The notes below the pieces were generated by a model that made no database searches, was not told where the DNA came from, and worked only from the letters and a program-made list of their open reading frames with translations. 64,000 nt of DNA, from contig NIVC01000114.1 in assembly GCA_002269645.1 (NCBI GenBank), forward strand, positions 62,001-126,000, in the 5' to 3' direction. This document shows positions 23,913 through 63,379 of the stretch, one piece after another. Both the position numbers and the translations under genes were made by a program. Position 1 is the stretch's first letter. Each line of letters begins with the position of its first letter. The stretch comes from Macrostomum lignano (Eukaryota).

Positions 23913-25262
23913 ATGACGGAAGGCTATCAGAAAAAACAATCATCGGATTGCCAGATTTTAAGCGCAGCAAATCTTCCACAGCGTCGCTGCTACCCCACTG
24001 TTTTGCGTCGGCGCCAGAGCTGCTGTAGCTTTTCTGCCCAGCCTGCAACCTGCGCAGCGACCGTTTGCACTGGAAGCAGCAATGGCGAGGGTACCGACGA
24101 CCTGCATTCGCCAATACAGGATGGCACGCATTGTGACGTCGATGATGACTCAAAACTCGAGATCGAGTGGCAAAGGCGCAGCTACCGACAGCGACGTCCT
24201 TCTATTGTCTCCCTGATGCAGTCGTCCGGCATTCGACTGTCATTGGAGCGCCTACCGGAGGAAATGGCCGAGGCAATTCAACAGGAGCGTCTGGCATCGA
24301 CCTCAGCGTGCAACGTTGCCGAGATGAAGACAGGAATGCTGAGCCAGTCCGAGTTGGACGATGCACCTAAAGGTACCGCGTCCTTGGCCTCTGTGTACAC
24401 CGCTGCTGACGCAGAGGGTATTTCTACACCGTCCGCCAACGGCATTCTGAGTCGACTGCTGAGCCTGTGCCGGCGGTGTCTCCAACCAGTGGCTGAGTTC
24501 ACGTCCAGCTCGAGACGGCGTCAGCAGCAGCAACAACAGCGCTATCAGCAGCTGCACCAGCTGCAGCATCAGCATCAGCACCAATACACACTCGGGCAAC
24601 GTCCGTCGAGTATCCAGACTCTGTCGCGACGAACCGGCTTCTCCATCGGCGAATTAAAGATCTTGTACCGTCGCCTCAAGCAGCACTGTCCGTCTGGCCA
24701 GGTGCGGCGTCGTCAGTTCACTGACGCAATGTGCCAGCTGTTCCCCACCGGTAACGCCACGCTGTTCTCGCACTACGTGTTCAACACGATGGACAATGAC
24801 TCGGACGGTTGTGTTTCTGTTGAGGAGCTGCTCAAATCTCTTGCAATGCTTACTCGAGGCAGCCGCCGCGACCAGGCCGAGTGGCTGTTCCGCCTGTACG
24901 ACGTCGACTGCGACGGTCGAGTGTCGCGTCAGGACTGCCTGTCCGTCTCCGCCGCGGTGCTGGATCTCTGCTGCTGCGAGCTGGCCCAGCCGCCTCTGCG
25001 ACCGGACAGTCCGGGACGCCTGGCCGACCGGCTGCTGAACGAAGCCGCCGACGTAGCGGCTGTCGGCCGCAGTGGAGTGACGTCCGGAACGACGGCAACG
25101 GTCGGGACGGTGACAACAACCGACGAGGAAATCGTCGATTCCGAAGGGTCCGGCGTTGGCAGCTCAGCGGCACTGACGAGAGAGGAGTTCATCGCCTTCG
25201 CGATGGACAAGCTGGCAGCTGTGCTGCCGGAGGCTGGGGTTTTTGACACCGCGTTTGGCTGA
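23913..25262 (+). CDS. KChIP/neuronal-calcium-sensor family EF-hand protein with long N-terminal extension (449 aa, single ORF)
   Basis: TGFSIGELKILYRRLKQHCPSG (cryptic EF1 with Cys-Pro), FPTGNATLFSHYVFNTMDNDSDGCVSVEE (EF2), WLFRLYDVDCDGRVSRQD (EF3), and ALTREEF remnant of EF4. This is the KChIP1-4 pattern. Confidence 0.85.
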   Translation: MTEGYQKKQSSDCQILSAANLPQRRCYPTVLRRRQSCCSFSAQPATCAATVCTGSSNGEGTDDLHSPIQDGTHCDVDDDSKLEIEWQRRSYRQRRPSIVSLMQSSGIRLSLERLPEEMAEAIQQERLASTSACNVAEMKTGMLSQSELDDAPKGTASLASVYTAADAEGISTPSANGILSRLLSLCRRCLQPVAEFTSSSRRRQQQQQQRYQQLHQLQHQHQHQYTLGQRPSSIQTLSRRTGFSIGELKILYRRLKQHCPSGQVRRRQFTDAMCQLFPTGNATLFSHYVFNTMDNDSDGCVSVEELLKSLAMLTRGSRRDQAEWLFRLYDVDCDGRVSRQDCLSVSAAVLDLCCCELAQPPLRPDSPGRLADRLLNEAADVAAVGRSGVTSGTTATVGTVTTTDEEIVDSEGSGVGSSAALTREEFIAFAMDKLAAVLPEAGVFDTAFG

Positions 25263-29209: not shown

Positions 29210-32200
29210 TCAGTTCGGACTGTCTCCAACCACAGTCTCATTCACGGTGAGATCGTTGGTGAAGACGCCAACCATGTTGCCATGACAACAGCAACAACTC
29301 TGGGCGGGACAGCATCTCACGCAGCGACTCAACATTCGTCTCACTTCTCTCCTCAGCTCGGCCATGAAGACAAACTGAACCAAAGGGTCTGTGAGGCAGC
29401 CCAGCAGGAAAGTGTGATGCAGAGCGAACGGCATGGTGAGTCCAGTCTCAGCCAGAAGGTAGTGCACCGTGAAGGGCGCAATGATCACCAGGCGACAGGC
29501 AGCCAGGACGGTCAGCATGGCACACAGGCGGAGCATGCAGTTGTTCTGCGTCTGTTGCTGCTGGCTTCTGTGCTGCAGAAGTCGCACAAAAGTCGCAACG
29601 TAAGCGACTGAGGATCCGACAAACAGGGACGCGGCGATGAGCATGTGCAGCCAGCGGATGGCTTCGCCGAGGCGCATTCGAATGTCGCAGCTGCTGGTCA
29701 GCGATTCCGCAATGGGAACGGCGCAGCCAGCGGCCATGAAGGGCGCAGCCATGGCCAGGAACAGCCCGCTGGCTGTGCGACGGTTCCAGCGAGTGGACAG
29801 CGGCTTAAAGACGGCCAGGGCGCGGTCCACAGCCAGGCAGAAGCTGGCCGCCATCTCCGTGCCGATCAGGGCGTCCCGGGGTGCCAGGAAGGCCGACGCC
29901 GGCCAGTAGAACCGCTCGAAGCGGAACAGAGGATTGGCCTCGACGTTGCCAAGACCCAGGGTGGCCGCGAACCAGCAGTAGATGCACATCTGCACGGGCG
30001 AGGGGTGTGCAGTTCAATGGGGTTGTAGCCCAGGGGTCAGAGCGCCTGACTCATGGCTAAAATGTTGTTGATCGAATCTGAATCAATCGAAAAAGATTTG
30101 TGTCCTTGAGAAAGACAACTGACTCTGCATTGCTTCAGTTCACCAGCTATAAAATGGGTGCCAGCATTAGCTGGGGTAATTGAGGGTGTGTGTGGCGATC
30201 CCCCTCCCCCACCCCAGTCTTTGGGCTGAACAGCCGTACGCAGTCTTCAGATGAGCCTTCAGGCTCAAGCAAGCAAGTACACTCTGTGCCTTTAGAGTTG
30301 AGCCTCATGGCTAGCTGGGTGAATCTTACGACAACCCCCCCCCCCTAGGCCTATTAGATTGCACACCAATGAATATGTCATCTTATCCTAGCGTTTTGAG
30401 TTCTAGGAGTATCAGATTGGGCACCTCATCGCTGTCTTTAAATCTATCTATCATTTTTACTATAAGTAGTGTCTCCTGCGACGTATTTTCTTCTCTGTCT
30501 TTTCAGCCTTTTAGCGACAGCAGCACGTGACGCAGCATTGCAAAAGAAGCAACTGCCAATCAACATTTCATCGATTGAACTGGCAACCTCATGGCTGGTC
30601 TATTGTTCTCAAAGTCTATAGAGAATAGTCCAATAGAAAACGGTCCAATATACCAGTTTAAAAGTACAGTCGGGTGTTCGAGTTGTACTTTTAACTCTTA
30701 ATCTTCCTGTCGACCTAATGAAGTCTGATTTTTTTGCTATCAACGCAGCACTTTTGACGGCAAACCTCTTTAGTAAAGACAAATTTCCAGAAATACATTT
30801 CCTTCATCGATCCATATCGTGTCTCCCGTAGATGAGCAAATCAGCAAATACTGCCATGCTGCCATGGGAGACATTGTTTGCGTACTCAGTGCCATGGCAG
30901 CTTCTTTGAATGCTGAACTGTGTGAATATTTATTCAAGCTGGTGATGTTCCAATTTCAAGTGGTTAGCGGCAGTTCTCAGGTGCTGCTTGAGCTTGTCAA
31001 ACACAGCAGGAGCTGCACTGCAACTCAAACTATTTATGGAAGACGAAACAGAAATCCTAGAGAAGATACGAGATTTGGGAGAATAGGATGCAGATGGGGA
31101 ACTGAAATAGAACTATTTTGTCTGCAGCTAGGGCGATGCTAACTTGAAAGTTTTAACTGACATGGTCTCATCACAGTCAGAGCTGAAATAGGGACACGGA
31201 TAGACAGACACTAAGACAGAAACTATGACAGACGCTGAGACAGACACTAAGACAGACACTAAGACAGACACTGAGACAGACACCAAGACAGACACTGAGA
31301 CAGACACTGAGACAGACACTGAGACAGACACTGAGACAGACACTGAGACAGACACTAAGACAGACACTGAGACAGACACTGAGACAGACACTGAGACAGA
31401 TACTAAGACAGACACTGAGACAGACACTGAGACAGACACTGAGACAGACACTGAGACAGACACTAAGACAGACACTGAGATAGACACTGAGGCAGACACT
31501 GAGAAAGACACTGAGACAGACACTGAGAAAGACACTGAGACAGACACTGAGACAGACACTAAGACAGACGCTAAGACAGACAGTGAGACAGACACTGAGA
31601 CAGACACTGAGACAGACACTAAGACAGACACTGAGACAGACACTGAGACAGACACTAAGACAAACACTAAGACAGACACTAAGACAAACACTAAGACAGA
31701 CGCTAAGACAGACACTGAGACAGACACTGAGACAGACACTGAGACAGACACCAAGACAGACACTGAGACAGACACCAAGACAGACACTGAGATAGACACT
31801 GAGACAGACACTGAGATAGACACTGAGACAGACCCTGAGACAGACACTAAGACAGACACTAAGACAGACACTGAGACAGACACCAAGACAGACACTGAGA
31901 CAGACACTGAGACAGACACTGAGACAGACACTGAGACAGACACTAAGACAGACACTGAGACAGACACTGACACAGACACTGACACAGACACTGACACAGA
32001 CACTGAGACAGACTTTAGGACAGACACTGAGACAGACACTAAGACAGACACTGAGACAGACACTAAGACAGACACTGAGACAGACACTAAGACAGACACT
32101 AAGACAGACACTAAGACAGACACTAAGACAGACACTAAGACAGACACTAAGACAGACACTGAGACAGACACTGAGACAGACTTTAGGACAGACACTGAGA

Positions 32201-39189: not shown

Positions 39190-41247
39190 ATGAGTGAACA
39201 AATCAGTGCCCGTGAGGCTGCCACCACAGGAAATATCCAGGCACTCCGACATCATCTGAACCCTAAACGAGGAAGAAACAAAATATATCTTTTTTTGCAA
39301 AACCGTTTCAAAACTTGCTGCAACTAATGGTCACTTAGAAGTTGTCAAGTTTCTCGTGCCGACAGTCGCTGACCAAGCAAAAAGAGATCAGTGCTGCATC
39401 GAGGCTGTTGAATCTGCTGCAATCAATGGGCACTTAGAAATCGTCAAGTTTCTCTTCAAAAAAGTCGCTAACCAAACAAAAAGAGATCAGTGCTGCATCG
39501 AGGCTGCCAAATCTGCTGCAAGCAAGGGTCAGTTAGAAGTCATCAAGTTTCTCGTGCCGACAGTTGCTGACCAGACAAAAAGAGATCAATGCTGCATCGA
39601 GGCTGCCAAATCTGCTGCAAGCAATGGTCAGTTAGAAGTCGTCAAGGTTCTCCTCGAAAAATTCGCTAACCAAACAAAAAGAGATCAGTGCTGCATCGGG
39701 GCTGCTGAATCTGCAGCAAGCAATGGTCAGTTAGAAGTCATCAAGTTTCTCGTGCCGACAGTTGCTGACCAGACAAAAAGAGATCAGTGCTGCATCAAGG
39801 CTGCGAGAATAGCTGTAATCCGCGGTTATGTAGAAGTCGTCAAGTTTCTCCTCGAAAGAGTCGCTGATCAAACAAAAAGAGATGATTGCTGCATCGAAGC
39901 TGCCGAATCTGCTGGCAGAAATGGCCACATTGATATCGTCAAGTTTCTCGTGCCGACAGTCGCTGACCAAACAAAAAGAGATGATTGCTGCATCAAAGCT
40001 GCCGAATCTGCTGGGAGAAATGGCCACATTGAAATCGTCAAGTTTCTCGTGCCGACAGTCGCTGACCAAACAAAAAGAGATGATTGCTGCATCAAAGCTG
40101 CCGAATCTGCTGGCAGAAATGGCCACATTGAAATCTTCAAGTTTCTCGTGCCGACAGTCGCTGACCAAACAAAAAGAGATCAGTGCTGCATCAAAGCTGC
40201 CGAATCTGCTGCAAAAAATGGTCACTTCGAAATCGTCAAGTTTCTCGTGCCGACAGTCGCTGACCAAACAAAAAGAGATCAGTGCTGCATCAAAGCTGCC
40301 GAATCTGCTGCAAAAAATGGTCACTTCGAAATCGTCAAGTTTCTCGTGCCGACAGTCGCTGACCAAACAAAAAGAGATCAGTGCTGCATCGAGGCTGCGA
40401 GAATAGCTGTATTCCGTGGTCAGTTAGAAGTCGTCAAGTTTCTCCTCGAAAAAGTTGCTAACCAAACAAAAAGAAATCACTTCTGCATCGAGGCTGCTGT
40501 ATCTGCTGCAACAATTCTTGAGTGGGAAGTCGTCAAGTTTCTCGTGTCACAAGTCGCTGACCAAGCAAACAGAGATCGCTGCTGCATCAGAGCTGCCGAA
40601 TCTGCTGCAATCAATGGTCAGTGGAAAGTCGTCAATTTCATCTCGTGTCTCTTAAGTCCAGATCAGAGAGCGACTCTCCGTTTCGGATACGCAGGTCAGG
40701 CTTGCTCTCGTCTTCAAGAAGATGCCGTTGCCTCCCTCGGCGGTCTCGAACCCGACTGGCTCTTCCAATCGAGCTCCATCCTCAGCTTCACTGCAGCAAT
40801 GGCCATCGAAGGCAGGAACTCTGTTCTCAACGACACCCTCTCTCGAATGCAGCCAGCTCACATCACACAGCTGCTCCGTCTCTCCATCTCTCACAGACAC
40901 GTCGCTCTTGCTGTCACACTGATCAATGATGAGCGAGTCAGCACACAGCATGTCGATCTGCCAGACAGCACTGGAGTCACTGCTCTCATGATGGCAGCTG
41001 ATGCAGGTCATCACGAGCTCATTGAGAAACTCGTCGATCTCGGTGCGTCAGTGCGTGCTGAAGACAGTCAGGGTCGGACTGCTCTGTCACGAGCGTGCGA
41101 AGCCGGTCACGTGCGAGCAGCCAAGGCTCTGATGGACAGAGGAGCGGATGCGAGTCATCGAGACGGTCGGGGTCTGACGTGTGCGGAGGTGGCAGAGCGA
41201 TTTGAGCAGCGGCAGGTGCTGCGGCTGCTGGATCTCAGTAGAGAGGG
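39190..41247 (+). CDS. Paralog 1 exon 1: 13 full plus 1 partial 33-aa near-identical ankyrin repeats and 2-3 canonical C-terminal ANK repeats
   Basis: 99-bp units (e.g. 39961 vs 40060) with consensus CCIKAAxxAxxxGHxEIVKFLVPTVADQTKRDQ; C-terminal TGVTALMMAADAGHHELIEKL...GRTALSRACEAGH. Confidence 0.9.
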
Positions 41248-44200
41248 GTGAGTGAGGCGAGAATTTTGTGAATCTTTTTAGTATTTGATATTATATCCTG
41301 CTTTGGTAAAGCATTTTTGTTATGTTAGTAGGAAACTCTTGGTAAAATTGCTTAAAGCAAAAATATTTTAAAGAATAGTTGGGGTTACGCGACGAAGTGG
41401 TGAACACAGGAACGAGAGAAGAAGTGAGACAGACATGGGAAAAATGACAAGACAGAAGACAGAAAGTAAGAAATTGTTTTCTGAAGTTTCTGATGAGTCA
41501 AGAAGTAATTTTTGTGTCCAGTGAGGAGAGGCAGAGAGCGCTGGCAGAGAAGAAAAGCAGCCAAGCACCGGTTTGCTCAAGTGCAGCTCACTGCACACCG
41601 CAGACGTTTCAATATTTTCAACTCATCAGCAACCGAACTCTAGAATTTCCGGTCCAGCTAGCGATTTTCTTTTTAAATTTGCACATTTCTCCCATACTTT
41701 ACTCTGTCTTGCTCATTGCCTGCTTTCTTTCGGTCATCTGCTTCTACCTGGCTCCCTCCGCTTTTTGATACTTTTACCTGAAAGAGCATTGGAATTTGAT
41801 GAAGCTGGATTTTTAACTCAATCAAGAAATGTGTGGCGCGAAACATTCTAAAAGTCAACTGCTGTGAGAACCCTCGCTTTCCTTCCCGCATTGCAGAAGC
41901 CCAGAGGTCCGGCAGGCAGCCGCTCACCGCTTGGATTCGGGCCTTCATCGGTGAGTCTGACCGGTTCGGCTTTCACTGCCGCATTGCACCTTCCAACAGG
42001 CTGGCAGCTTGGGGCAGAAATTGCAGCGAAACTCAGGAGGGTTGAGATGGGTTGGACTGAGTGCTGCAGCAGCTACACTCTCAGCTCTCCTGCTTGAGAT
42101 GCCAGTCTGAGTGCTGCAGCAGCTGCACTCTCAACTCTCCTGCTTGATATGCCAGTCTGAGTGCTGCAGCAGCTGCACTCTCAGCTCTCCTGCTTGAGAT
42201 GCCCGTCTGAGTGCTGCAGCAGCTGCACTCTCAGCTCTTCTGCTTGTTCTGTCCATCCAACTCTGAGCAAGTCACCCACACGCATCTCGGATCATTCCAG
42301 GCTCCCAGACGACTCCCAGCAAGACAGGCGCATGAGCGAGGAGCTGCATCGACTGCTCAGCGATGCGGGATTCACCGAGCAGAGAGCAAAGTGTCAGCAG
42401 AGACTGGCTGACTGGCTGGAAGAAGTCGCTGGAGTCCTCACACAGGATGGCGATCGCAGGCGGATTACGGGCAGCTACGCAGAGGGCTGGGCCAACAGTC
42501 TGGTTCAAGTGAACGGCAGGACAGCTGCAGACTCGGACATTGACTGGACTGTGCTGGTTGCTAAGCAAGAGTTCCATCTGGAAGGTGGCTGCAGAGGACG
42601 ATCTGGTTCCTGCAGAGACGCCCCTCGACTGCAGGTCACGGAGGGCCACGCACAGGTGGCAGTGGGAGCAGGTGAGTGAGACTGGGTTCATCATCAGAAT
42701 GCTGAGATCCGCATGCAACTGGAAGCCCATTAACTTTGCTCAATTTTAAATTCGCAACCGAGTGGCGCCCAGCCTCCAGCATCTTCTGTGACTGCGAATG
42801 TCGGCTTGGGTGCTGAAACAAGCGGCAGGCGAAATTGAAAAGAAAACTTTGATGCCAACTTGCTGAGCCGGGCCATTAGGTTTTGAATTCACAGGCTCCG
42901 ATTGCAGCAGAGTGGGTGCCGCGGTGCTTGGGTGACCCACGGTAGGCGGCATGGCTCTGCTGAGGTGCCGCTGCTCTCACTTGGAAAATTTCAAACAAAA
43001 TAAAACGAAGCCGCCCTGACTGCCTGATCGGTGCCTTGCTGCGGGGCACTGAGTCCTGATGATGCTTGAGCAGCTGTGCTGAGCTGCAACCTGATGAAGC
43101 CAGAGCAGCTGAGCAAGTGTATAAATAAGTGGCAATAAATAAATGTACTTTCACGAGCGAATCGGCGGCCATTTCGAAGTGGAGGAAATGGCTGCACGCG
43201 CTGAAGATTTACCGCCACTACCTGCTCGGACGGCACTCACGGTCTTCACCGAGCACTGCCCGCTCACGTTTCTGAATTCCGAACGAGTCGACAGTCACGG
43301 CCGTCTCGGGCGCTGGCGGTTTCTACTGAGGGAATTCAACTTCACCATCAAGTACACAAAGGGCGTCGACAACGTGGAGGCGGACGGCCTGTCGAGAATG
43401 CACGAGAGCCATTGCGAGACGCTTCGAGCGTTGGCAACAGAGCTGCAGCCGCAGGTGCCCAACCGAGAGATGCGACAGGCACTGGAGAGCGACAGCACGA
43501 CTCCGCCAAGATGGCCCAACAGCAGCTTGTGACACCTCAGCCGCATCTGGCGGAAGTTGCGGATTCAAGACGGCCTTCTCTGCCGGGCCTTCAACGACGC
43601 TGCGGAACCGAGGGAGGTCCCGATGATTCCTCACTGACTTTCACGAGGGCATCGGCGGCTACTTCAGACCGGAGAAAATGGCCCACACGCTGAAGCAGAC
43701 CGCGTACTGGCCTGGGCTGCAGAGCGACGCGGTGAGTTTCTGCCAGGAGTGCCAGACCTGCCAGCTGAAAAAGGCGCAGCACCGGCCCGCAGCCCCACTC
43801 GGTGAGATGCCGATCGGCAAGCCCTGGCAGACGGTAGCGATCGATGTGTTGAAGGTCAGATCAGACCGAGGCAACAGATACCTGCTGGTGATGCAGGACC
43901 AGTTCTCCAAGTTCCTGACCGCCATGCCGATGCCAGATCAGACCGCCAAGACCATCGCGGACGCTGCAGTGAAGGTCTTCTCCCTGCTCGGAGTTCCATC
44001 CGTCCTCCACTCGGACCGGGGCGCGAACTTCGAGAGCGAGCTGTTCCAGGAGACGCTGCGAGCACTGGGCATCAGGAAGACGCGCAACACGCCGTACCAT
44101 CCGCAGGGAAATGGACTGGTGGAGCGCGGTAACAAGTCGCTGCTGCAGCTGCTGCGGCTGTTCGCCGAGACCGAGTCTAGCTGGGATGAGCAGCTGCCGC

Positions 44201-46909
44201 TAGCGGTCCTGTCCTACAACTCCAGGGTCCACAGCTCAACCAAGGTGGCACCGCTGACGGTGATGACCGGCCGCGACCCGCAGCTCCCGCCGAAGGTGCA
44301 GAGCAGCGAGCGGCAGTTCGACATCGGCACCTACTCGGCACAGCTGGAGCGGCGGCTCGCCCGGATCCGAGAGTTCGTCGAGGAGAACCTGCTGGTAGCC
44401 GCCGGGCAGCAGCAGAAGGCGGCTCACGACAAGAAGGCGACGGACCTGCCGCAGTTTCTCCAAGGCTTCGAGGTGCTGCTTAGCATTGAGATGCGGCGCT
44501 CGAAGGTGGCGCCCTACTGGGAGCCGGGTTGGACGGTGCTTGAGCAGCGCGGCCACTCGGTGTGCATCCGCCGCGCCTTCGGCAGCCGGCCGGTCTGCTG
44601 GGTGCACGTGAACCGGCTGCGCAAGCGGTTTGAAGCCCAGCCCGACTCTGACCAGCTCCGCCAGCCGCCGGTGACCCACCAGGTCGTGCCGGAGCGCAGC
44701 CCAGGACTTCTTTGGTGTTAGCACTGAGTGAGAGACCGAGACAGTTCTGTTATTGCGTCTGCTGTAGCTGTTTGCTTTTTTTGTGCTTCCGTTCCACTTT
44801 TTGATTCTATTACCTCATTTGCTTTTGCTCTTTTCATTGGTGGAGAATTGTAAAGTTTTATTCCTGGTCTCAGAGGCACACTCGTAGATATTGCTGAATC
44901 ATTGTCGTGTTTTAATATAGGAATGTACATCTCGCTTATATGTACATTGATGCCAATAAATATATCGTTCACTGCCAAATACCTCGGGTTACACAGATAC
45001 TTACGAGTATCAAAAGAGGTATTCAGCTATCTTTATTATGGTCGAATGAAACTCTCCATTGCGCGCTTGTCTTAAGTATTCTTATAAAGGCTTTAGGTCA
45101 ATAAAATGTTTTCATAATTACATGCCCGGTTTCGGCCTAAAAATATGAAAATTGAGTGGAAACTTCTACCTTTTGTGTTTGAAAGAATAGTAAATTCCAT
45201 TGAACTGTCGAATCCTCAAAATTCTCTCGCAGCCGAGAGAAAATATTGCTGTTTTAAATGATATTTCATTAGATTCAAAGCAACCCATCTTCTTCACTTT
45301 CCGCTCACTGCTCTCTACAGGCAGCCAACCTGCAGTGACAGACACGGCGTGCGGTGTGCGGCCTGCACAGCACACGTGCCATGCGATCCAGTGCTGCAGC
45401 AGTTTCTGTAAAGACAGAATTGAAAAACTGCTTAGAGACAGTCCTGATCAGGTTCACCTCGTTCGGGCGACCAGACCGAGCTCGACCAACGAGCTCAGAG
45501 TGAGCTTCAGCTTCCAAGAGAAACGCATCATGAGAGACCTGAGCACAGTCCAGGGCCAGCTGTTCAAACTCATCAAGTTCATCTTCAAGAGACACTTGCC
45601 GCTCACTCTGGACACACCTGGACTCAAGACCTACCATGCAAAGACTCTGCTCTTCACAATGCTCGAGAAGCATGGCGCAGATCCTGAAACTGAGACTTGG
45701 CAGCCCCACAATCTGATCGCTCTGCTCAAGGAGTCTCTCGACATGATGCTGAGCTTCATCGACTCAAGCAGCTCGCCCGATGAGTGCATGCCGCACTTCT
45801 TCATGCCCGACGCTCCGCTCTACTTCAAGAACGCTGGAATCGGCGGCGACTTCGACAACACGAAGGCGAGGGTTCAAGACCGACTTTGTGAGCTGAGAAG
45901 CGACATCGGCGGAGTGGTCGAGCAGCTGAAGAGACTCGTGAGACCTCTGCAGTCAGAGAAGTTCTACTTTCACCCGTTCACTCTGCTGCCTCTGACAGCG
46001 CCGCTTGCTGTCACCAACATCATAGAATTAATTGACTATCCACAAATGTACTACAAGTTCGCAGACGTGTACAGTGTGGTGCACCAGTGTGTGAGCGAGC
46101 TGCAGTCGGAATCGAGAAACAGAAGCACCCTGATGAGGCAGCTCAGTCTCCTGCATGAGCTGCAGTGGTGCAAATGCGCCGCCCTGTGCATGACCGCCAT
46201 GGCGTATTTGAAGTTCGGAGAATCTGAGGAGGCTGAGAGACTCACGATGAAGCTGCGGGGACATCAGGTTGAGTCGGGGTTGAAGCCATTGGATATTCGA
46301 GATAAGGGTAGATACCAGTTTAGTGAGATAAAGCTGCCAGAAGACTCTGACTGGGCGTGGAGGTTCTGCCTCCCCTGCGACTCTCCGCCTCGCTTCCCAT
46401 TCCTTCCCGAGTTCACGCAGACTCTGTTCACAGACAGACTGTCGCAGCCTCTCTCCTCCCACCTGTACGTGAACTTCCGCTGCCTGAGCTGGAGTCTCCA
46501 AGCTGAGCTGCTCCGCAATCGCGCACCTGCAATCGCATTCGATCATTGGATTGAACAGCTGCTTGGAGACCCGGACTTGGAGGAGCTGCTCACTCTGGCT
46601 CACTACAGCGACTGCCGCGAGCACGTGGAGCTCAGCCTGCAGCAGATGGAGATGATCGAGAAAGAGAGACGCGTCGCCATGGAGACGCAGGACGGGGAGA
46701 AGATCGGCTGGGTCAGGCAGAAGCGGTGGCGAGTTTCGAACCGCAGCGGCAGCGACAGCAGCGCTCAGCGCAGCAGGGAAGATGAGGAGCGGAGGCTGTG
46801 GGCGAGGGGAGGCTGCGGCGAGACGGGGTCGATTTTGGGTGTCTGGTTGCCATGGAAACTGCAGCGGAGCAGAGAGACAGCTGGACTCACGCCAAGCTCA
46901 GTCGGATGA
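39190..46909 (+). CDS. Ankyrin-repeat / cGAS-like (Mab-21, cGLR) nucleotidyltransferase fusion, paralog 1; exons 39190-41247, 41897-41950, 42301-42671, 45321-46909 (about 1356 aa after correcting a +1 T at 39290-39296)
   Basis: Junctions GG|GTGAGT (phase 2), TTGCAG|A...CG|GTGAGT (phase 2), TTCCAG|G...G|GTGAGT (phase 1) and CTACAG|GC are all in frame; the corrected CDS is 4071 nt = 1357 codons. NTase motif TGSYAEG...SDIDW; Mab-21 motifs LRVSFSFQEK, LIKFIFK, LKTYHAKTLLF, W.P.NL, MPHFFMP. Confidence 0.82.
42050..42245. repeat. 50-bp repeat (x4) in intron 2 of paralog 1; sister array at 62590-62780
   Basis: GAGTGCTGCAGCAGCTGCACTCTCAGCTCTCCTGCTTGAGATGCCAGTCT. Confidence 0.9.
42301..42671 (+). CDS. 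Paralog 1 exon 3: NTase catalytic GS/DxD motif
   Basis: RRITGSYAEGWANSLVQVNGRTAADSDIDWTVL; canonical AG/GT boundaries. Confidence 0.85.
43143..44721 (+). mobile_element. Ty3/Gypsy LTR-retrotransposon pol fragment (RNase H end, integrase HHCC and DDE), truncated, in cGLR intron 3
   Basis: VFTEHCPL...RLGRWRFLLREFNFTIKYTKGVDNVEADGLSR (RNase H end); YWPGL...CQECQTCQ (Zn finger); VAIDVL, HSDRGANFES, PYHPQGNGLVER (D,D35E). Frameshifts between the segments; no gag or RT visible. Confidence 0.92.
45321..46909 (+). CDS. Paralog 1 exon 4: Mab-21 C-lobe plus helical C-terminal region
   Basis: ORF 45200..46909; HLVRATRPSSTNELRVSFSFQEKRIMRDLSTVQGQLFKLIKFIFKRHL...LKTYHAKTLLFTMLEK. Confidence 0.87.
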
Positions 46910-47659
46910 GACTAGAGAAGCTGGAGAGACTTGATGCAGCAGCCGGAGTCCTCAAAGTCGAGTCGCAAAGTCGAGGTCGGAAAAGGAAGGCCGAGTCAGA
47001 CTGACTGCGTGGTGCGGTGTTCGGTGCTGACACAAATTTCATGTACTTTGGGTTTGTTCAATCGAACTGTTTATTTTGCTGCATGCTGGCTTGATGATGG
47101 TTCTGCGCGTTCTGCCAATTTCTGTCTAATTTAGCAACTGAAAGGCTGCTTTGATTTGTCTGCTTTTTAGGAAATAAGCACATCGAGAGACATCAAATGC
47201 GAGCAGCCCTCCTGCTATGAGCTGCAGTTTTGCACATTTGTGCTGCAATTCAATTCACACTGCATGCTAAATTGCTTTTTCCATTCAAACTGCGTGTCTG
47301 CTTTGATGCGGGCTTTTCTCTGCGATTTTGTTCTGCAGACTTCAATACCCAATTGCCAATGCTTTAAATGAAATATTCAAGCCGAATGTGCAGGTAGCAG
47401 TTATCTGATGAACCTGGAAAATTTAAAGGTTGGCTGAGTCAGTGAGAAGCTGGAGAGACTTGATGCAGCAGCTTGAGTTGAACTCGTAATTTTGTAAGCT
47501 TTTCTGACATATTTCAGATGCACTCTTGTGTCTTAGGAATTTTTTGTCCGTTCTCTTGGTTTTTTAAGTACCAGTTTTGAGTACCTGCTCAATCAGCCTT
47601 CAAATTTATTACATCATGTACTTTCATCATGTTGTCGTGTACCCTGCAGCAACTGCCAG

Positions 47660-56900: not shown

Positions 56901-57100
56901 GACTGCAGCCGTGACTGACATCTGCCACTCTGACAACATCTAGGAATCATTAGGTATTCCCTTCACAAGTCTTCAAAATCACGACGCCACCCTTTTTCTC
57001 TCTGACCGTTTCTCTAAATCCATTAAAGTACTCGTAATAAACCAGAAGAAAACTATTTACGTACCTTCTAGATGAAGCACGCATCAGCACACCAAGCGAA

Positions 57101-60100
57101 ATGAGCCAACAGGTCAGATCCGATGAGGCCGCCAAGACAGGAAATATCCAGGCACTCCAACATCATCTGGACCTTCAGAGAGAGACAAACAGAAAATATC
57201 TTTTTTGCAAAAGGTATTCTAAACTTGCCGCAAGAAAGGGTCAGTTAAAAGTAGTCAAGTTTCTCGTCTCTAAAGTCGCTGACCCAACAAGAAGAGATCG
57301 GTGCTGCATCGAGGCTGCAGAATCTGCTGCATACAATGATCAGTGGGATGTCATCAAGATTCTCGTGCCTAAAGTCGCGGACCAAAAAAAAAGATATGAT
57401 TGCTGCATCGAGGCAGCTAAATGTGCTGCACACAAAGGTAAGATAGAAGTCGTCAAGTTTCTCGTGCCGACAGTCGCTGACCAGACAAAAAGAGATCAGT
57501 GCTGCATCAAGGCTGCCACATCTGCTGCAAGAAATGGTCAGTTAGAGGTCGTCAAGTTTCTCGTGCCTGAAGTCGCTGTCCAAACAAAAAGATATGATTG
57601 CTGCATCGAGGCTGCCACATCTGCTGCAATAAATGGTCACTTAGAAGTCGTCAAGTTTCTCGTGCCGACAGTCGCTGACCAAACAAAAAGAGATCAGTGC
57701 TGCATCAAGGCTGCTAAATCTGCTGCAAGAAAAGGTCAGTTAGAAGTCGTCAAGTTTCTCGTGCTGACAGTCGCAGACCAAACAAAAAGAGATCAGTGCT
57801 GCATCAAGGCTGCTAAATCTGCTGCAAGAAATGGTCACTTAGAAGTCGTCAAGTTTCTCGTGCTGACAGTCGCAGACCAAACAAAAAGAGATCAGTGCTG
57901 CATCAAGGCTGCAGAATCTGCTGCTGACAATTGTCAGTGGGAAGTCGTCAAGTTTCTCGTGCCGACAGTCGTTGAACAAACAAAAAGAGATCAGTGCTGC
58001 ATCAAGGCTGTCAAATCTGCTGCTGACAATTGTCAGTGGAAAGTCGTCAAGTTTCTCGTGCCGACAGTCGTTGACCAAACAAAAAGAGATCAGTGCTGCA
58101 TCAAGGCTGCGAGAATAGCTGTAATCAGTGGTCAGTGGGAAGTCGTCAAGTTTCTCGTGCCGACAGTCGCTGACCAAACTAGAAGAGATCAGTGCTGCAT
58201 CGAGGCTGCTGAAACTGCTGCTGACAATTATCATTGGGAAGTCGTTAAGTTTCTTGTGCTGACAGTCGCTGACCAAAGAAAAAGAAATCAGTACTGCATC
58301 CAGGCTGCACAATATGCTACAGAAAAGAATCAAGGAGAAGCGGTTGATTTTCTCATCTCGTGTCTCTCAAGTCCGGATCAGAGAGCGAATCTCCGTATCC
58401 ATTGCGCAGTCACGGCTTGCTCTCGTCTTCACGAAGATGTCGTTGCCTCCCTCGGCCTCGAGCCCGAATGGCTCTTCCAATCCAGCAACATCCTCAACTT
58501 CACCGCAGCAATGGCCATCGAAGGCAGGAACTCTGTTCTCAACGACACCCTCTCTCGAATGCAGCCACCTCACATCACACAGCTGCTCCGTCTCTCCATC
58601 TCTCAAAGATACGTCGCTCTTGCTGTCACACTGATCAATGATGAGCGAGTCAGCACAGAGCATGTCGATCTGCCAGACAGCACTGGAGCCACTGCTCTCA
58701 TGCTGGCAGCTGATGCAGGTCATCACGAGCTCATTGAGAAACTCATCGATCTCGGCGCGTCAGTGCGTGCTGAAGACAGTCAGGGTCGGACTGCTCTGTC
58801 ACGAGCGTGCGAAGCCGGTCAGGTGCGAGCAGCCAAGGCTCTGATGGACAGAGGAGCGGATGAGAGTCATCGAGACGGTCGGGGTCAGACGTGTGCGCAG
58901 GTGGCAGAGCGATTCGAGCGGCGGGAGGTGCTGCGGCTGCTGGATCCCATTGGAGCGGGGTGAGTGTTGGTCTAGGCAAAACTGAGCCAGGTCATGTTTG
59001 CAAGCGAAGAAGACTACGATTGAACAGAACCATGCTCACTGGCAAGCGCAAATGTACAAACTGTTAAGGGTAAAACGATAGCGCGCAAGAATGACCAGTC
59101 ACGGGAGGGAGAGAGAGAGAAAGTGACAGTGAAACAACGTGAAAACTAAAGTACAACTCGAACATTGAGTGAGGCGGGAATTTCGCGAACATCTTTTTAT
59201 GATATTATTTTTTTAAGCTAAGCACTATAAATCTAGTGCCCCCTTACGGGGCGCACAATAAGCAATCAAAGAACCAATTCCTTCTTCTGTTTTATAAATC
59301 ACCTTGTTCGAGTAAAATTGTCACGGACAAAGATGTTTGCTAAGAATCTCTATTTTGTGAAAGTAACAAAAATACGAAAAAATACAACAAAAAAGCCTTC
59401 ACAAAGACAACACGCATTTGTCCTAATAAAATCTATAACTCAGACCGCAAGCATCCCCCTAAATAGCAAGCATCCTCCGGTAGCATGCACCCCTTCCCAG
59501 ATAGCAAGTACCCCCAGATGGAGAGCAACCCAGACAGAAAGCATCCTACCCCCCCCCCCCCCCCAAGATACAAAGCATACGCCCAATTACAACAGCAAGC
59601 ACCCCCCAAACAATAGCAAGAACCCCAAAATACAATCCCAAGTATCCCCCAGATAGCATACCCCAAGATGGCAAGATCCTTAGCAATAATCCTTAGTTCA
59701 TCAAGTGCAGTAATCCTTGGTTTATCAAGTACAATAATCATTAGTTTATCAAGTGCAGTAATCCTTGGTTCATTAGGTGCAATAATCCTTAGTTCATCAA
59801 GTGCAGTAATCCTTAGTTCATTAAGTGCAATAATCCTTGGTTTATCAAGTGCAATAATCCTTGGTTTATCAAGTGCAGTAATCCTTGGTTTATCAAGTGC
59901 AGTAATCCTTGGCTTATTAAGTGCAGTAATCCTTGGTTTATCAAGTGCAGTAATCCTTGGTTTATCAAGTGCAGTAATCCTTGGTTTATCAAGTGCAATA
60001 ATCATTAGTTTATCAAGTGCAGTAATCCTTGGTTTATCAATTGCAAGAATCATTGGTTTATCAAGTGCAGTAATCCTTGGTTCATTAAGGCAATAATCCT

Positions 60101-61099
60101 TGGTTCATCAATTGCAAGAATCATTGGTTTATCAAGTGCAATAATCCTTGGTTCATTAAGTGCAATAATCCTTGGTTCATCAATTGCAAGAATCATTGGT
60201 TTATCAAGTGCAGTAATCCTTGCGCTGTCCCTTCTTCATCCCGTGCCTACTTAGAGTATTGTTTGTGCTCCTCGTCACCCCATCTACTTTTAGAATCCCA
60301 AATGGTGACGCAAGGCTCCTGACCTCTCCCTCACCCCGATGACTCGATCATCACCCTCCTCTTTTGCAGCCTTTTCTCATGCTTTTGTTCTCTTATCAAA
60401 ATTTCTCATGCGACACCCACCCCTCCTCCGCCTCTATTGTTCTCTTTTACTATTTTTTGTTCTCCTTTGTGCACACAATTATCACATTTTTCAGATTTTC
60501 TCGTTCTTCTGTTCTCGTTTTCGCATCCAATTGGCACCCCTCTCTCAATTTTTGCTCTGCTATTGTTCTCGGTTCTCCCCAATTATCCCCGTTTTCCATT
60601 TCCTTTGATCTCGTTCTGGATCCCATTGTTCTTATTTGCTTACGCAACACTTCTTCGGCTCCCCGCTGTGCTCTTTTTCCCCTACCCCTCCTCCAAATTG
60701 CGCAATTCTCCCATTTCTCATGTTGCTATGCCGTTCTCATACTTCTCATCATGACTCATTGACGCCATTTTCCCGGCAGCCAATCAGAGAGAGGGAGTCT
60801 TGGAAACGAGCTTGCAGCGGCCGCTGTGAGGACTATTTAAAGAAGTGATTTTCGGCTTGATAGCCTCCAGAAGTCTTTCTTTCCTTCCTTCGGATGGTTG
60901 CCTTTGGCCTTTGCTACGGCCAACGCCTAGGGCTTGTACCTTCGGTCCTACCTTTGGACTCGTTTCGTCTATAAGACGAACCTATGCCGGCCCGCGGTCC
61001 AGCATGCTCAGCATCACCTGAGCTTCATCAGCGCCTCGTCGCTACAGCGCATCGCCACTTCACTACCTGCCTGTCTGCAGTCAACAGCTCACTCCATCG

Positions 61100-61130
<31 letters not shown>

Positions 61131-63204
61131 TCTCTCTGTGCAGCTTCCGGTGAGTTCGTGTACTGGTTTGTACTCTAATTGCCTTTGCTTATTTGGGGTT
61201 TGCTTATTTCCCATTGCTTGATTAGAGGACTGAGCCGATTGTGAACCGTACTTTGCTGCATTTTACTCAATAGTGAAGCCGCCGAATCGCCTGCTTATTT
61301 CGCCTAAGGGCCTAATTATTAACAATTACTAAACTCCTCATTAGGCACTCTTTCACCACCATTTCAGTCATGAGTTGCTGAGCCTTTCTCCCTGGGTGAA
61401 AAAGCATAAGGAAGTTTGGGTAAGCCAATGGCCTCTCCCTGTGAAACGCCCGCCTGTGTGTGCGTGCTGCGGGTCCGTGTGTGTCAGTAGAGGGGATTAG
61501 CGATTTGTGGCACAGAATGGCAGCAGGGAGGTTGCAACCCCATGCTGACGCGTCCCTTCGCCCTGAGCAATCTGAACTTTAGCTAGCACATGTTCACCTC
61601 ACACTACTCTTAGTAATTGAAGCCGGAAGTCCGCCTCATTCACAGCCACAAAGGATCTCCTGCTGAGAAATGCTCCAGATTGATCCCAGAGTTCCCGATT
61701 GTGCCCAAAGCAAAGTCCCTGTACTCGGTTGCATGCGCCTCCCCTGTTAGCTTAAATCCTCTGGTAATCAATCCAGACAGGGCTCTAGCCTGATAAGGTC
61801 TGGTCATAGATCCAGGTGAGCCCGGTCATATAGAGTGGTGGCAGCCACTCGGTCACGCCAATTATTGCACCTTGGCTGCAGGTGGGGCCCATGTGGGTCC
61901 TCGGCCCTCTGGTTTCGAGGTCCTTCAGGTCATTCAGGGCAAAGGTCCTTCAGGTCATTGCCCGGTCATAGGCAGCCTACGGTCATTGCTCCTCCCTGCG
62001 AAGCGGACGGTCATCAAGGGCGATTACATCAAAGTGCAATAATTCTTGGCTTAGCAAGTGCTACGTGGCAAAATGGCGAGCACAGTAAAGAAGAGGAGAA
62101 AAGATGGGCATCAGTTTGCTCAGGTGGAGCCCACGGCAGACCGCAGCCGGTTTGATATTTTTAAATCATCAAGCATCCAATATACTAAAACTAAAGTCTC
62201 AAATCTCCGGTCCAGCAATCGAGCTTCTCCTTCAATCTGCGGAATTCACTCGCTCTTGGCTCGACTCTCTCTCTTGCTCATTGATACTTCTACCTTAAAG
62301 AGCGTTGAAAATTGATGAAGCTGCAGATGAAGATGAATTTTTAACTCAATCAAAAATGTGTGGCACAAAAAACATTGTAAATCCTCACTGCTGTGAGAAC
62401 CCTCGCTTTCCTTCCCGCATTGCAGAAGCCGAGAGGCCCGGCGGGCAGCCGCTCACGGCTTGGATTCGCGCCTCCATCGGTGAGTCTGACCGGTTCGGCT
62501 TTCACTGCCGCATTGCGCCTTCTAACAGGCTGGCAGCTTGGGGCAGAAATTGCAGCGAAACTCAGCAGGGTTGAGATTGGGTTGGACTGAGTGCTGCAGC
62601 AGCTGCACTCTCAGCTCTCCTGCTTGAGATGACAGTCTGAGTGCTGCAGCAGCTGCACTCTCAGCTCTCCTGCTTGAGATGACAGTCTGAGTGCTGCAGC
62701 AGCTGCACTCTCAGCTCTCCTGCTTGAGATGACAGTCTGAGTGCTGCAGCAGCAGCTGCACTCTCAGCTCTCCTGCTTGTTCTGACCATCCAACTCTGAG
62801 CAATTCACCCACACGCATCTCGGATCATTCCAGGCTCCCAGACGACTCCCAGCAAGACAGGCGCCTGAGCGAGGAGCTGCATCGACTGCTCAGCGATGCG
62901 GGATTCACCGAGCAGAGAGCAGAGTGTCAGCAGAGACTGGCTGACTGGCTGCAACAAGTCGTTCGAGTCCTCACACTGGAAGGCGATCGCAGGCAGATGA
63001 CGGGCAGCTACGCAGAGGGCTGGGCCAACAGTCTGGTGCAAGTGAACGGCAGGACAGCTGCAGACTCGGACATTGACTGGACTGTGCTGGTTGCTGGGCA
63101 GGAGTTTCATCTGGAAGGTGGCTGCAAAGGAAGATCTGGATCCTGCCGAAACGCCACTTGGCTGCAGGTCACGGAGGGCCACGCACAGGTGGCAGTGGGA
63201 GCAG
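57101..63204 (+). CDS. Ankyrin-repeat / cGAS-like NTase fusion, paralog 2 (partial; exon 4 beyond the window); exons 57101-58959, 62426-62479, 62834-63204
   Basis: Intact 620-codon ANK ORF with 11 full plus 1 partial 33-aa repeats ending GG|GTGAGT. The 54-bp exon 2 and 371-bp exon 3 have the same sizes and phases as in paralog 1. Exon 3 encodes MTGSYAEGWANSLVQVNGRTAADSDIDWTVL. Confidence 0.82.
59683..60221. repeat. 24-bp minisatellite ATCAAGTGCAGTAATCCTTGGTTT in intron 1 of paralog 2
   Basis: Direct. Confidence 0.96.
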
Positions 63205-63379
63205 GTGAGTGAGGCTGGGTTCATCATCAGAATGCTGAGATCCGCATGCAACTGGAAGCCCATTAACTTTGCTCAAATATAAATTCGCAACCGAGTGGTG
63301 CCCAGCTTCCAGCAGCTTCTGTGACTGTGTCTTTACCTGGGTCGGTTTGGGTGTCCAGTCCCGAGTGCAATATGTAATA

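Follow-up and report, generated by a model that had tools for sequence, protein, structure and literature searches.

cGAS-like receptors (cGLRs) were delimited by Li et al. 2023 (PMC9980059) using three criteria: the motif h[QT]GS-X8-20-[DE]h[DE]h-X50-90-h[DE]h, homology over both lobes, and predicted structure. Their survey recorded fusions to ankyrin (ANK) and TPR repeats as well as lineage-specific radiations, and the legend to their Fig. S5A reports that changing any key motif residue abolishes cGLR activity. Here we describe a gene of this kind in the flatworm Macrostomum lignano. It lies in a stretch of 64,000 nucleotides (assembly GCA_002269645.1, contig NIVC01000114.1, positions 62,001 to 126,000, forward strand), which we call the window and number from its first letter. 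On sequence evidence the locus is one four-exon gene, encoding an array of 33-residue ankyrin repeats, an ANK cap, a short linker, a cGAS/Mab-21-type nucleotidyltransferase (NTase) and a family-specific C-terminal domain, and it is an unannotated paralog within the M. lignano ANK-cGLR family. The copy as assembled is probably disabled by four changes: replacement of the third catalytic Asp by His, truncation at a T-run, a displaced C-terminus and a retroelement in intron 3.

Both ANK-fused cGLRs in general and this family in particular are already catalogued (Li et al. 2023), and the original prediction for this locus, made from the DNA letters alone, overrated its novelty. Table S2 of Li et al. 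2023 (PMC9980059) lists the M. lignano protein PAA68676.1 (BOX15_Mlig016402g1, our P0003) with Ank_2 domains, and Table S3 lists five M. lignano NTase constructs (#89-93, including PAA68676.1 and PAA93208.1) that were purified and screened. These proteins have the same architecture as the gene described here, to which their C-terminal parts are 78-84% identical (84% for PAA68676.1), and they share with it the junction-spanning peptides, the TGS/DSDIDW and LRVSFSF motifs and the tail domain. The present copy differs from them in its His substitution, its two frame disruptions and its intron 3 retroelement, and its ANK array, with 14 repeats, exceeds theirs in length and is at most 63% identical to them.

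Gene structure of the locus

The open reading frame (ORF) listing shows three ORFs at the locus, at 39356-41251, 42161-42679 and 45200-46909. These had been predicted to splice into four in-frame exons encoding about 1356 amino acids after one homopolymer correction, and both proposals held. All three junctions (41247/41897, 41950/42301 and 42671/45321) combine a GTGAGT donor with a polypyrimidine-CAG acceptor, and a single frame is kept across them, with phases 2, 2 and 1, from 39356 to a stop at 46907-46909. An annotated paralog, P0001 (locus L001 on contig NIVC01000085.1), also has four exons with a 54-nt exon 2 and matching junction contexts, and annotated paralog proteins traverse all three junction peptides. 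We regard the gene model as confirmed because the canonical in-frame junctions, the exon structure of P0001 and the junction peptides of the paralogs all agree with it. Removal of one T from a run of seven in exon 1 gives 1357 codons, or 1356 amino acids. The predicted domain layout was likewise recovered, with the ANK array followed by the ANK cap, the 54-nt linker exon, the GS and DxD motifs and the Mab-21_C domain. The gene extent needs one revision. The exon model stands, while the 3' end at 46909 probably belongs to an out-of-frame reading, the conserved C-terminus ending at 47002-47004. Coordinates of the features are collected in Table 1.

Predicted cGAS-like fold and catalytic motif

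A cGAS-like fold, as originally proposed, is supported for the C-terminal part of the protein by structure prediction. The AlphaFold2 model of the C-terminal 581 amino acids, built from a 44-sequence family alignment, has a predicted local distance difference test (pLDDT) score of 90.4 and a predicted template modelling score of 0.91. When this model was compared with the PDB using Foldseek, the top 46 matches were cGAS chains (probability 1.0, E ~1e-7, template modelling scores of 0.5-0.6 normalised to target length), and MAB21L1 followed at rank 47. The Mab-21_C profile (PF20266) matched with 28 bits against a gathering cut-off of 24.1, and a phmmer search of PDB sequences returned one weak cGAS match (E 0.065), located on the Mab-21_C part. 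Some more distant M. lignano subfamilies are named 'Mab-21 domain-containing' in UniProt. Alignment of the family profile to the mollusc and coral cGLRs of Li et al. Table S3 using hhalign (98.8%, E 5e-17, residues 1-350) paired ITGS with TGS, DSDIDW with SSDMDM, and the RPAQxTCHAI column with the third-acid strand; together with the Mab-21_C match, it extends the homology over the NTase core and the C-terminal helix bundle. A global hhalign run against four cGAS/cGLR sequences was discarded because the N-lobe was misaligned.

The first part of the cGLR motif is present in this copy as I-T-G-S, 20 residues and D-I-D-W. The second part, a third acid in the form h[DE]h, is replaced by His (Q-H-T) 58 residues past DIDW. 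In this column Asp or Glu is found in 53 of 56 family members, and the 25 closest have Asp in 24 cases and Glu in one. No variation was seen in the GS motif across the family, and at least 90% of the 44-56 members compared retain both acids of DxD and the third acid. The assignment to the cGAS/cGLR family therefore stands for the GS and DxD motifs, the Mab-21 lobe and the fold, and fails for the third metal-binding acid. Homology and predicted structure place the present copy among the cGLRs of Li et al., and it falls outside their active-site motif because the third acid is His. The motif ELRVSFSF had been considered as the site of the third catalytic residue and was rejected, since LRVSFSF corresponds to WRLSFS in cGAS (hhalign 95.7%); the true column is RPAQ[D/H]TCHAI.

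The predicted protein shares with vertebrate cGAS (PDB 4K9B and 6CT9) the bilobed NTase and helical Mab-21 fold, the GS and DxD motifs and a WRLSFS-type motif, at only about 14-16% identity. It differs in having an N-terminal ANK array, an additional C-terminal domain of 245 amino acids, and His at the third acid. Its NTase core is near-neutral rather than basic, with an isoelectric point (pI) of 6.6 compared to 8.95 for mouse cGAS. By the pI trend of Li et al., a near-neutral core speaks against direct nucleic-acid sensing and would fit control through the ANK module. The Zn-thumb insertion of cGAS is missing from its usual position, and a Cys/His cluster follows the third-acid strand instead. 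Profile alignment with bivalve and coral cGLRs, among them the ANK- or death-domain-fused proteins of Stylophora pistillata, covers the entire NTase/Mab-21 core. The present family differs from these in its Platyhelminthes lineage, its 33-residue 'CC' ANK repeats encoded by 99-bp units, and a tail that lacks a PDB match. MAB21L1 (PDB 5EOG) has the same fold, and its catalytic status is uncertain or absent, with no known enzymatic activity. This developmental protein has a single domain and is strongly conserved throughout the animals, unlike the rapidly evolving, multi-copy, repeat-bearing family described here.

The conserved Cys/His cluster comprises C87, C94, C124, C133, H134, C138, C139 and C143 (numbering of the 581-residue part), is encoded at 42560-42600 and 45340-45415 on the forward strand, and lies around the third-acid strand, away from the cGAS Zn-thumb position. 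It may form a metal site. The family-specific tail domain is confidently modelled. When searched alone using Foldseek it gave no PDB match with E<1, the weak matches obtained being TPR-like. Downstream of it, the C-terminus conserved in the family closes with the basic sequence SRGRKRKAESD (46960-47001, forward strand), which looks like a nuclear localisation signal and is out of frame in the present copy.

The ankyrin array

The array consists of tandem 33-residue helix-turn-helix repeats that fit ANK profiles (Ank_2 at E 1e-55; Ank_4 with 10 stretches) and that appear in the DNA as 13.4 copies of a 99-bp unit with 83% match. It is the most divergent module of the gene. Its best database match is 66% identical, compared to 85-89% for the C-terminal part, and between the present gene and a tandem neighbour the amino-acid identity is 75% for ANK and 88% for the NTase exon. 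Variation within the array is concentrated at repeat positions 16, 19, 22-24, 26 and 27, and repeats 9 and 10 have identical protein sequences.

The original prediction had the repeat array set the specificity of the receptor. Its rapid divergence agrees with that proposal, and the substitution rates lend it no support. The ratio of nonsynonymous to synonymous substitution (dN/dS) is 0.77 at the variable positions and 0.46 at framework positions; no value exceeds 1, so positive selection in the array is not supported. With dN/dS at 0.77 and neighbouring repeats identical, unequal crossing-over accounts for the data no less well than selection for diversity would. Ligand gating with array-set specificity is something we can only infer.

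The same unusual 'CC' type of 33-residue ANK array is joined to a protein kinase domain in another M. lignano protein, P0195 (755 amino acids). The 'CC' array would therefore seem to be a module that is mobile in this genome.

Frame disruptions and the state of this copy

Under the standard that an intact gene runs uninterrupted from its ATG to the conserved stop of the family, the present copy, as assembled, is broken at both ends. At the 5' end, the ATG at 39190 is offset by one base from the frame of the ANK ORF, and with the seven-T run as assembled its frame stops at codon 46. Aligned with the tandem neighbour, the first 270 nt show no indel apart from the extra T. At the 3' end, the conserved C-terminus RLRRDG...KLERLDAAAGVLKVESQSRGRKRKAESD is displaced to a frame starting at 46810. 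Paralogs P0046, P0003 and P0006 read ...RRLWARA(R/K)LRRDG...VAMETAAEQRDSW..., and P0046 goes on ...KLERLDAAAGVLKVESQSRGRKRKAESD. Given this −1 change, the last 33 residues of the originally predicted protein and its stop at 46909 are an out-of-frame reading. Splicing out 46725-46915 was considered as an explanation for the shorter C-termini of some paralogs and was rejected, there being no GT or AG at the positions needed; locus L001 simply lacks the segment.

Intron 3 carries an insertion of about 2.2 kb that has no counterpart in the corresponding introns at paralog loci L001 and L002. It is a fragment of a long terminal repeat (LTR) retroelement pol gene in the sense orientation, with RNase H at 43143-43532 and integrase at 43678-44721. 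A 46-nt direct repeat within it, at 43147 and 43637 with 80% identity, suggests an internal duplication.

The 5' indel, in a homopolymer run, and the 3' indel, beside a G-run, could both be assembly errors. An assembly error is less likely for the Asp-to-His change, a G-to-C transversion. We consider the copy most likely to be a recently decayed or catalytically dead paralog, and an intact gene in which both indels are assembly errors to be a less likely explanation.

Table 1. Features of the ANK-cGLR locus and its tandem neighbour, numbered from the first letter of the window.
Feature	Coordinates	Strand	Remarks
Exon 1: start codon, N-terminal cap, ANK-like array, ANK cap	39190..41247	+	ATG frame as assembled stops at 39325-39327
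T7 run, 5' frameshift	39290..39296	+	T6 in intact tandem paralog; pairwise DNA alignment with 57060-57330
Divergent 33-residue ankyrin tandem array	39316..40639	+	99-bp period; Pfam Ank_2/Ank_4
ANK cap, degenerate then canonical repeats	40643..41247	+	canonical from ~40970
Exon 2, 54-nt linker	41897..41950	+	same-length exon in annotated P0001 on L001
Exon 3: spine helix, TGS (42470-42475), DSDIDW with first two catalytic Asp (42536-42544)	42301..42671	+	
Intron 3	42672..45320	+	~2.2-kb insertion at ~43110-45295, LTR-retroelement pol fragment
Exon 4 as originally predicted: remaining NTase lobe, Mab-21_C (45566-45820), tail domain, out-of-frame terminal peptide	45321..46909	+	
Third catalytic acid position, codon CAC (His) as assembled	45371-45373	+	GAC (Asp) in paralog loci L001 and L002
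Family-specific C-terminal (tail) domain, ~245 amino acids, helical hairpins and small sheet	45989..46723	+	confidently modelled, pLDDT 88
−1 frame change at ~46805-46812 relative to paralogs, conserved C-terminus in other frame	46805..47004	+	frame from 46810, stop at 47002-47004
Tandem paralog	57101..63206	+	intact ANK exon 57101-58963, NTase exon 62832-63206; rest beyond window

The family in Macrostomum and the tandem neighbour

The spliced C-terminal part matches 45 proteins, of which 44 are named M. lignano and one is a metagenome fragment; the best is 85% identical, and most combine ANK repeats with Mab-21_C. Every named match is thus from M. lignano, in agreement with the flatworm assignment made originally. 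A near-identical database protein was not found for either half of the gene. Among the 44 aligned members, Mab-21_C is present in 41 and ANK in 36, and some database models are ANK-only or Mab-21-only fragments. A HMMER scan of 1.8 billion cluster representatives returned 97 clusters at E<1e-10, and all eight of those sampled are from M. lignano. These searches indicate a large ANK-cGLR family that appears to be specific to Macrostomum. The paralog loci are 90-95% identical in DNA, in introns as well as exons, and the family-wide dN/dS is 0.6-0.8.

A tandem paralog lies about 10 kb downstream of the present gene. Its ANK exon is intact from ATG to donor (620 amino acids, 13 repeats), its NTase exon contains TGS and DSDIDW, and its exon order within the window is the same as that of the present gene.

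Two further M. lignano proteins, P0027 (1099 amino acids) and P0050 (2111 amino acids), carry a caspase domain (PF00656) C-terminal to the Mab-21/tail and ANK parts. Their NTase motifs are degenerate, reading DCDMNW and TNDINW, the latter with Thr at the third site. Direct fusion of a sensor to a protease may explain them, as may the merging of gene models.

Proposed mechanism and alternative explanations

The explanation we favour, with a probability of roughly 0.7, is that the locus belongs to the ANK-cGLR family, that this copy is disabled, and that intact members are nucleotide-second-messenger synthases under ANK control. We infer catalysis for the intact members because the GS/DxD/D motif is conserved within a fast-evolving family. 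The ANK module would bind a protein or other non-nucleic-acid ligand, or would keep the enzyme autoinhibited, and in either way control the NTase. Several results weigh against parts of this explanation. Of the HMMER profiles that the original prediction had named, PF20266 and Ank_2 were recovered and the Pfam Mab-21 NTase profile (PF03281) was not: the spliced C-terminal protein gave no match to it even at E<=10, and a scan of the aligned family members gave none at E<=0.001. The five M. lignano constructs lack the note that marks the 15 active enzymes of Li et al. Both results concern the enzymatic activity of the family. As to the decay of the present copy, a clear signature of relaxed constraint was not found. 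Its dN/dS against P0001 is 0.78 compared to 0.62 between two annotated intact paralogs, a difference that does not discriminate, and the latter value implies that a high ratio is a trait of the family. Apart from these breaks the ORF of about 4 kb is uninterrupted, and paralogs remain near-identical to the out-of-frame C-terminal peptide, so the indels must be either very recent or assembly errors.

If both indels are assembly errors, and the His either another error or tolerated, the locus could be a fully functional ligand-gated cGLR in which the variable ANK array sets specificity and the output is a cyclic nucleotide. The open coding sequence, its perfect splice sites and the catalytic triad conserved in the family all point this way, as do the sequence contexts of the indels, which are typical of long-read assembly errors, and the divergence of the array at a few clustered repeat positions. 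However, a transversion is atypical for an indel-type assembly error, and motif mutation kills cGLRs (Li et al. 2023). Substitution at the variable ANK positions stays below a ratio of 1, adjacent identical repeats speak for unequal crossing-over rather than selected diversity, and the paralog NTase domains fall outside the enzymes marked active. No flatworm STING has been reported, though Schistosoma alone is cited in this regard. We judge full function of this copy to be unlikely. A reading of the whole family that we hold at a similarly low, slightly smaller probability is that the Macrostomum ANK-cGLR-tail genes form a lineage-specific, rapidly diversifying receptor repertoire of about 100 clusters at 50% identity, with tandem pairs. 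In such a repertoire, diverse ligands other than nucleic acids would be recognised by hypervariable ANK arrays that unequal crossing-over has reshaped, and the arrays would in turn gate a cGAS-like enzyme, whose STING-independent output would pass through the C-terminal domain or fused caspases.

It is improbable, in our estimate, that the family including this copy is a non-enzymatic Mab-21-like scaffold, which would resemble MAB21L1 or an apoptosome- or inflammasome-type sensor and would signal without a second messenger, through protein-protein contacts of the ANK repeats, the tail and the fused caspase or kinase that some members carry. The presence of MAB21L1 among the structural matches, the near-neutral pI of the NTase core, the undetected PF03281 and the missing activity mark on every M. 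lignano construct are in keeping with a scaffold, as are the caspase-bearing proteins with degenerate NTase motifs and the kinase joined to the same ANK type in P0195. The caspase fusions, however, could be gene-model merges, and the invariant GS and the retained catalytic acids, despite a dN/dS of 0.6-0.8, are hard to explain without catalysis. Far less probable again is that the ANK and NTase parts are separate genes, or chance ORFs, whose in-frame joins are coincidental. The ANK-only and Mab-21-only database models would suit separate genes, but three successive consensus junctions stay in frame, paralogs annotated on other contigs have an identical architecture, the two parts are combined in 36 of 44 members, and the tandem copy keeps the same exon order.

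Other features of the window

Neighbouring ORFs include an EF-hand protein (449-amino-acid ORF) at 23913-25262 on the forward strand and a fragment of a rhodopsin-type seven-transmembrane receptor at 29210-29995 on the reverse strand. Across positions 1-24000, 2-kb blocks of about 31-39% GC alternate sharply with blocks of about 47-57%, a pattern that suggests AT-rich repeats or introns among GC-rich genes.

Discussion

The present locus represents a further member of a catalogued family, and is probably either inactive or misassembled. By itself it adds little beyond a case of birth-and-death turnover, with tandem duplicates, retroelement insertion, catalytic residue loss and frameshifts. It also carries a warning, since homopolymer indels in an assembly can masquerade as pseudogenes or hide them. 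A literature search, with no database search aimed at a Macrostomum STING, found nothing specific on Macrostomum with cGLRs or on flatworm STING, and the original statement that a functional description in flatworms is absent still appears to be true. A review records that cGAS and STING are absent from Schistosoma.

The broader interest lies in the family. Its large expansion of ANK-fused cGLRs makes Macrostomum an exception among flatworms, which to our knowledge are usually described as being without cGAS/STING-type immunity. If the receptor-repertoire reading is true, the family would represent repeat-array innate recognition in a phylum believed to have lost most of its cGLR signalling. 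Both RNA interference and transgenesis can be carried out in M. lignano. If intact members prove to be active enzymes, they would offer a tractable model for the control of a nucleotide-second-messenger synthase by a repeat array, and for the signal receiver in an animal where no STING is known.

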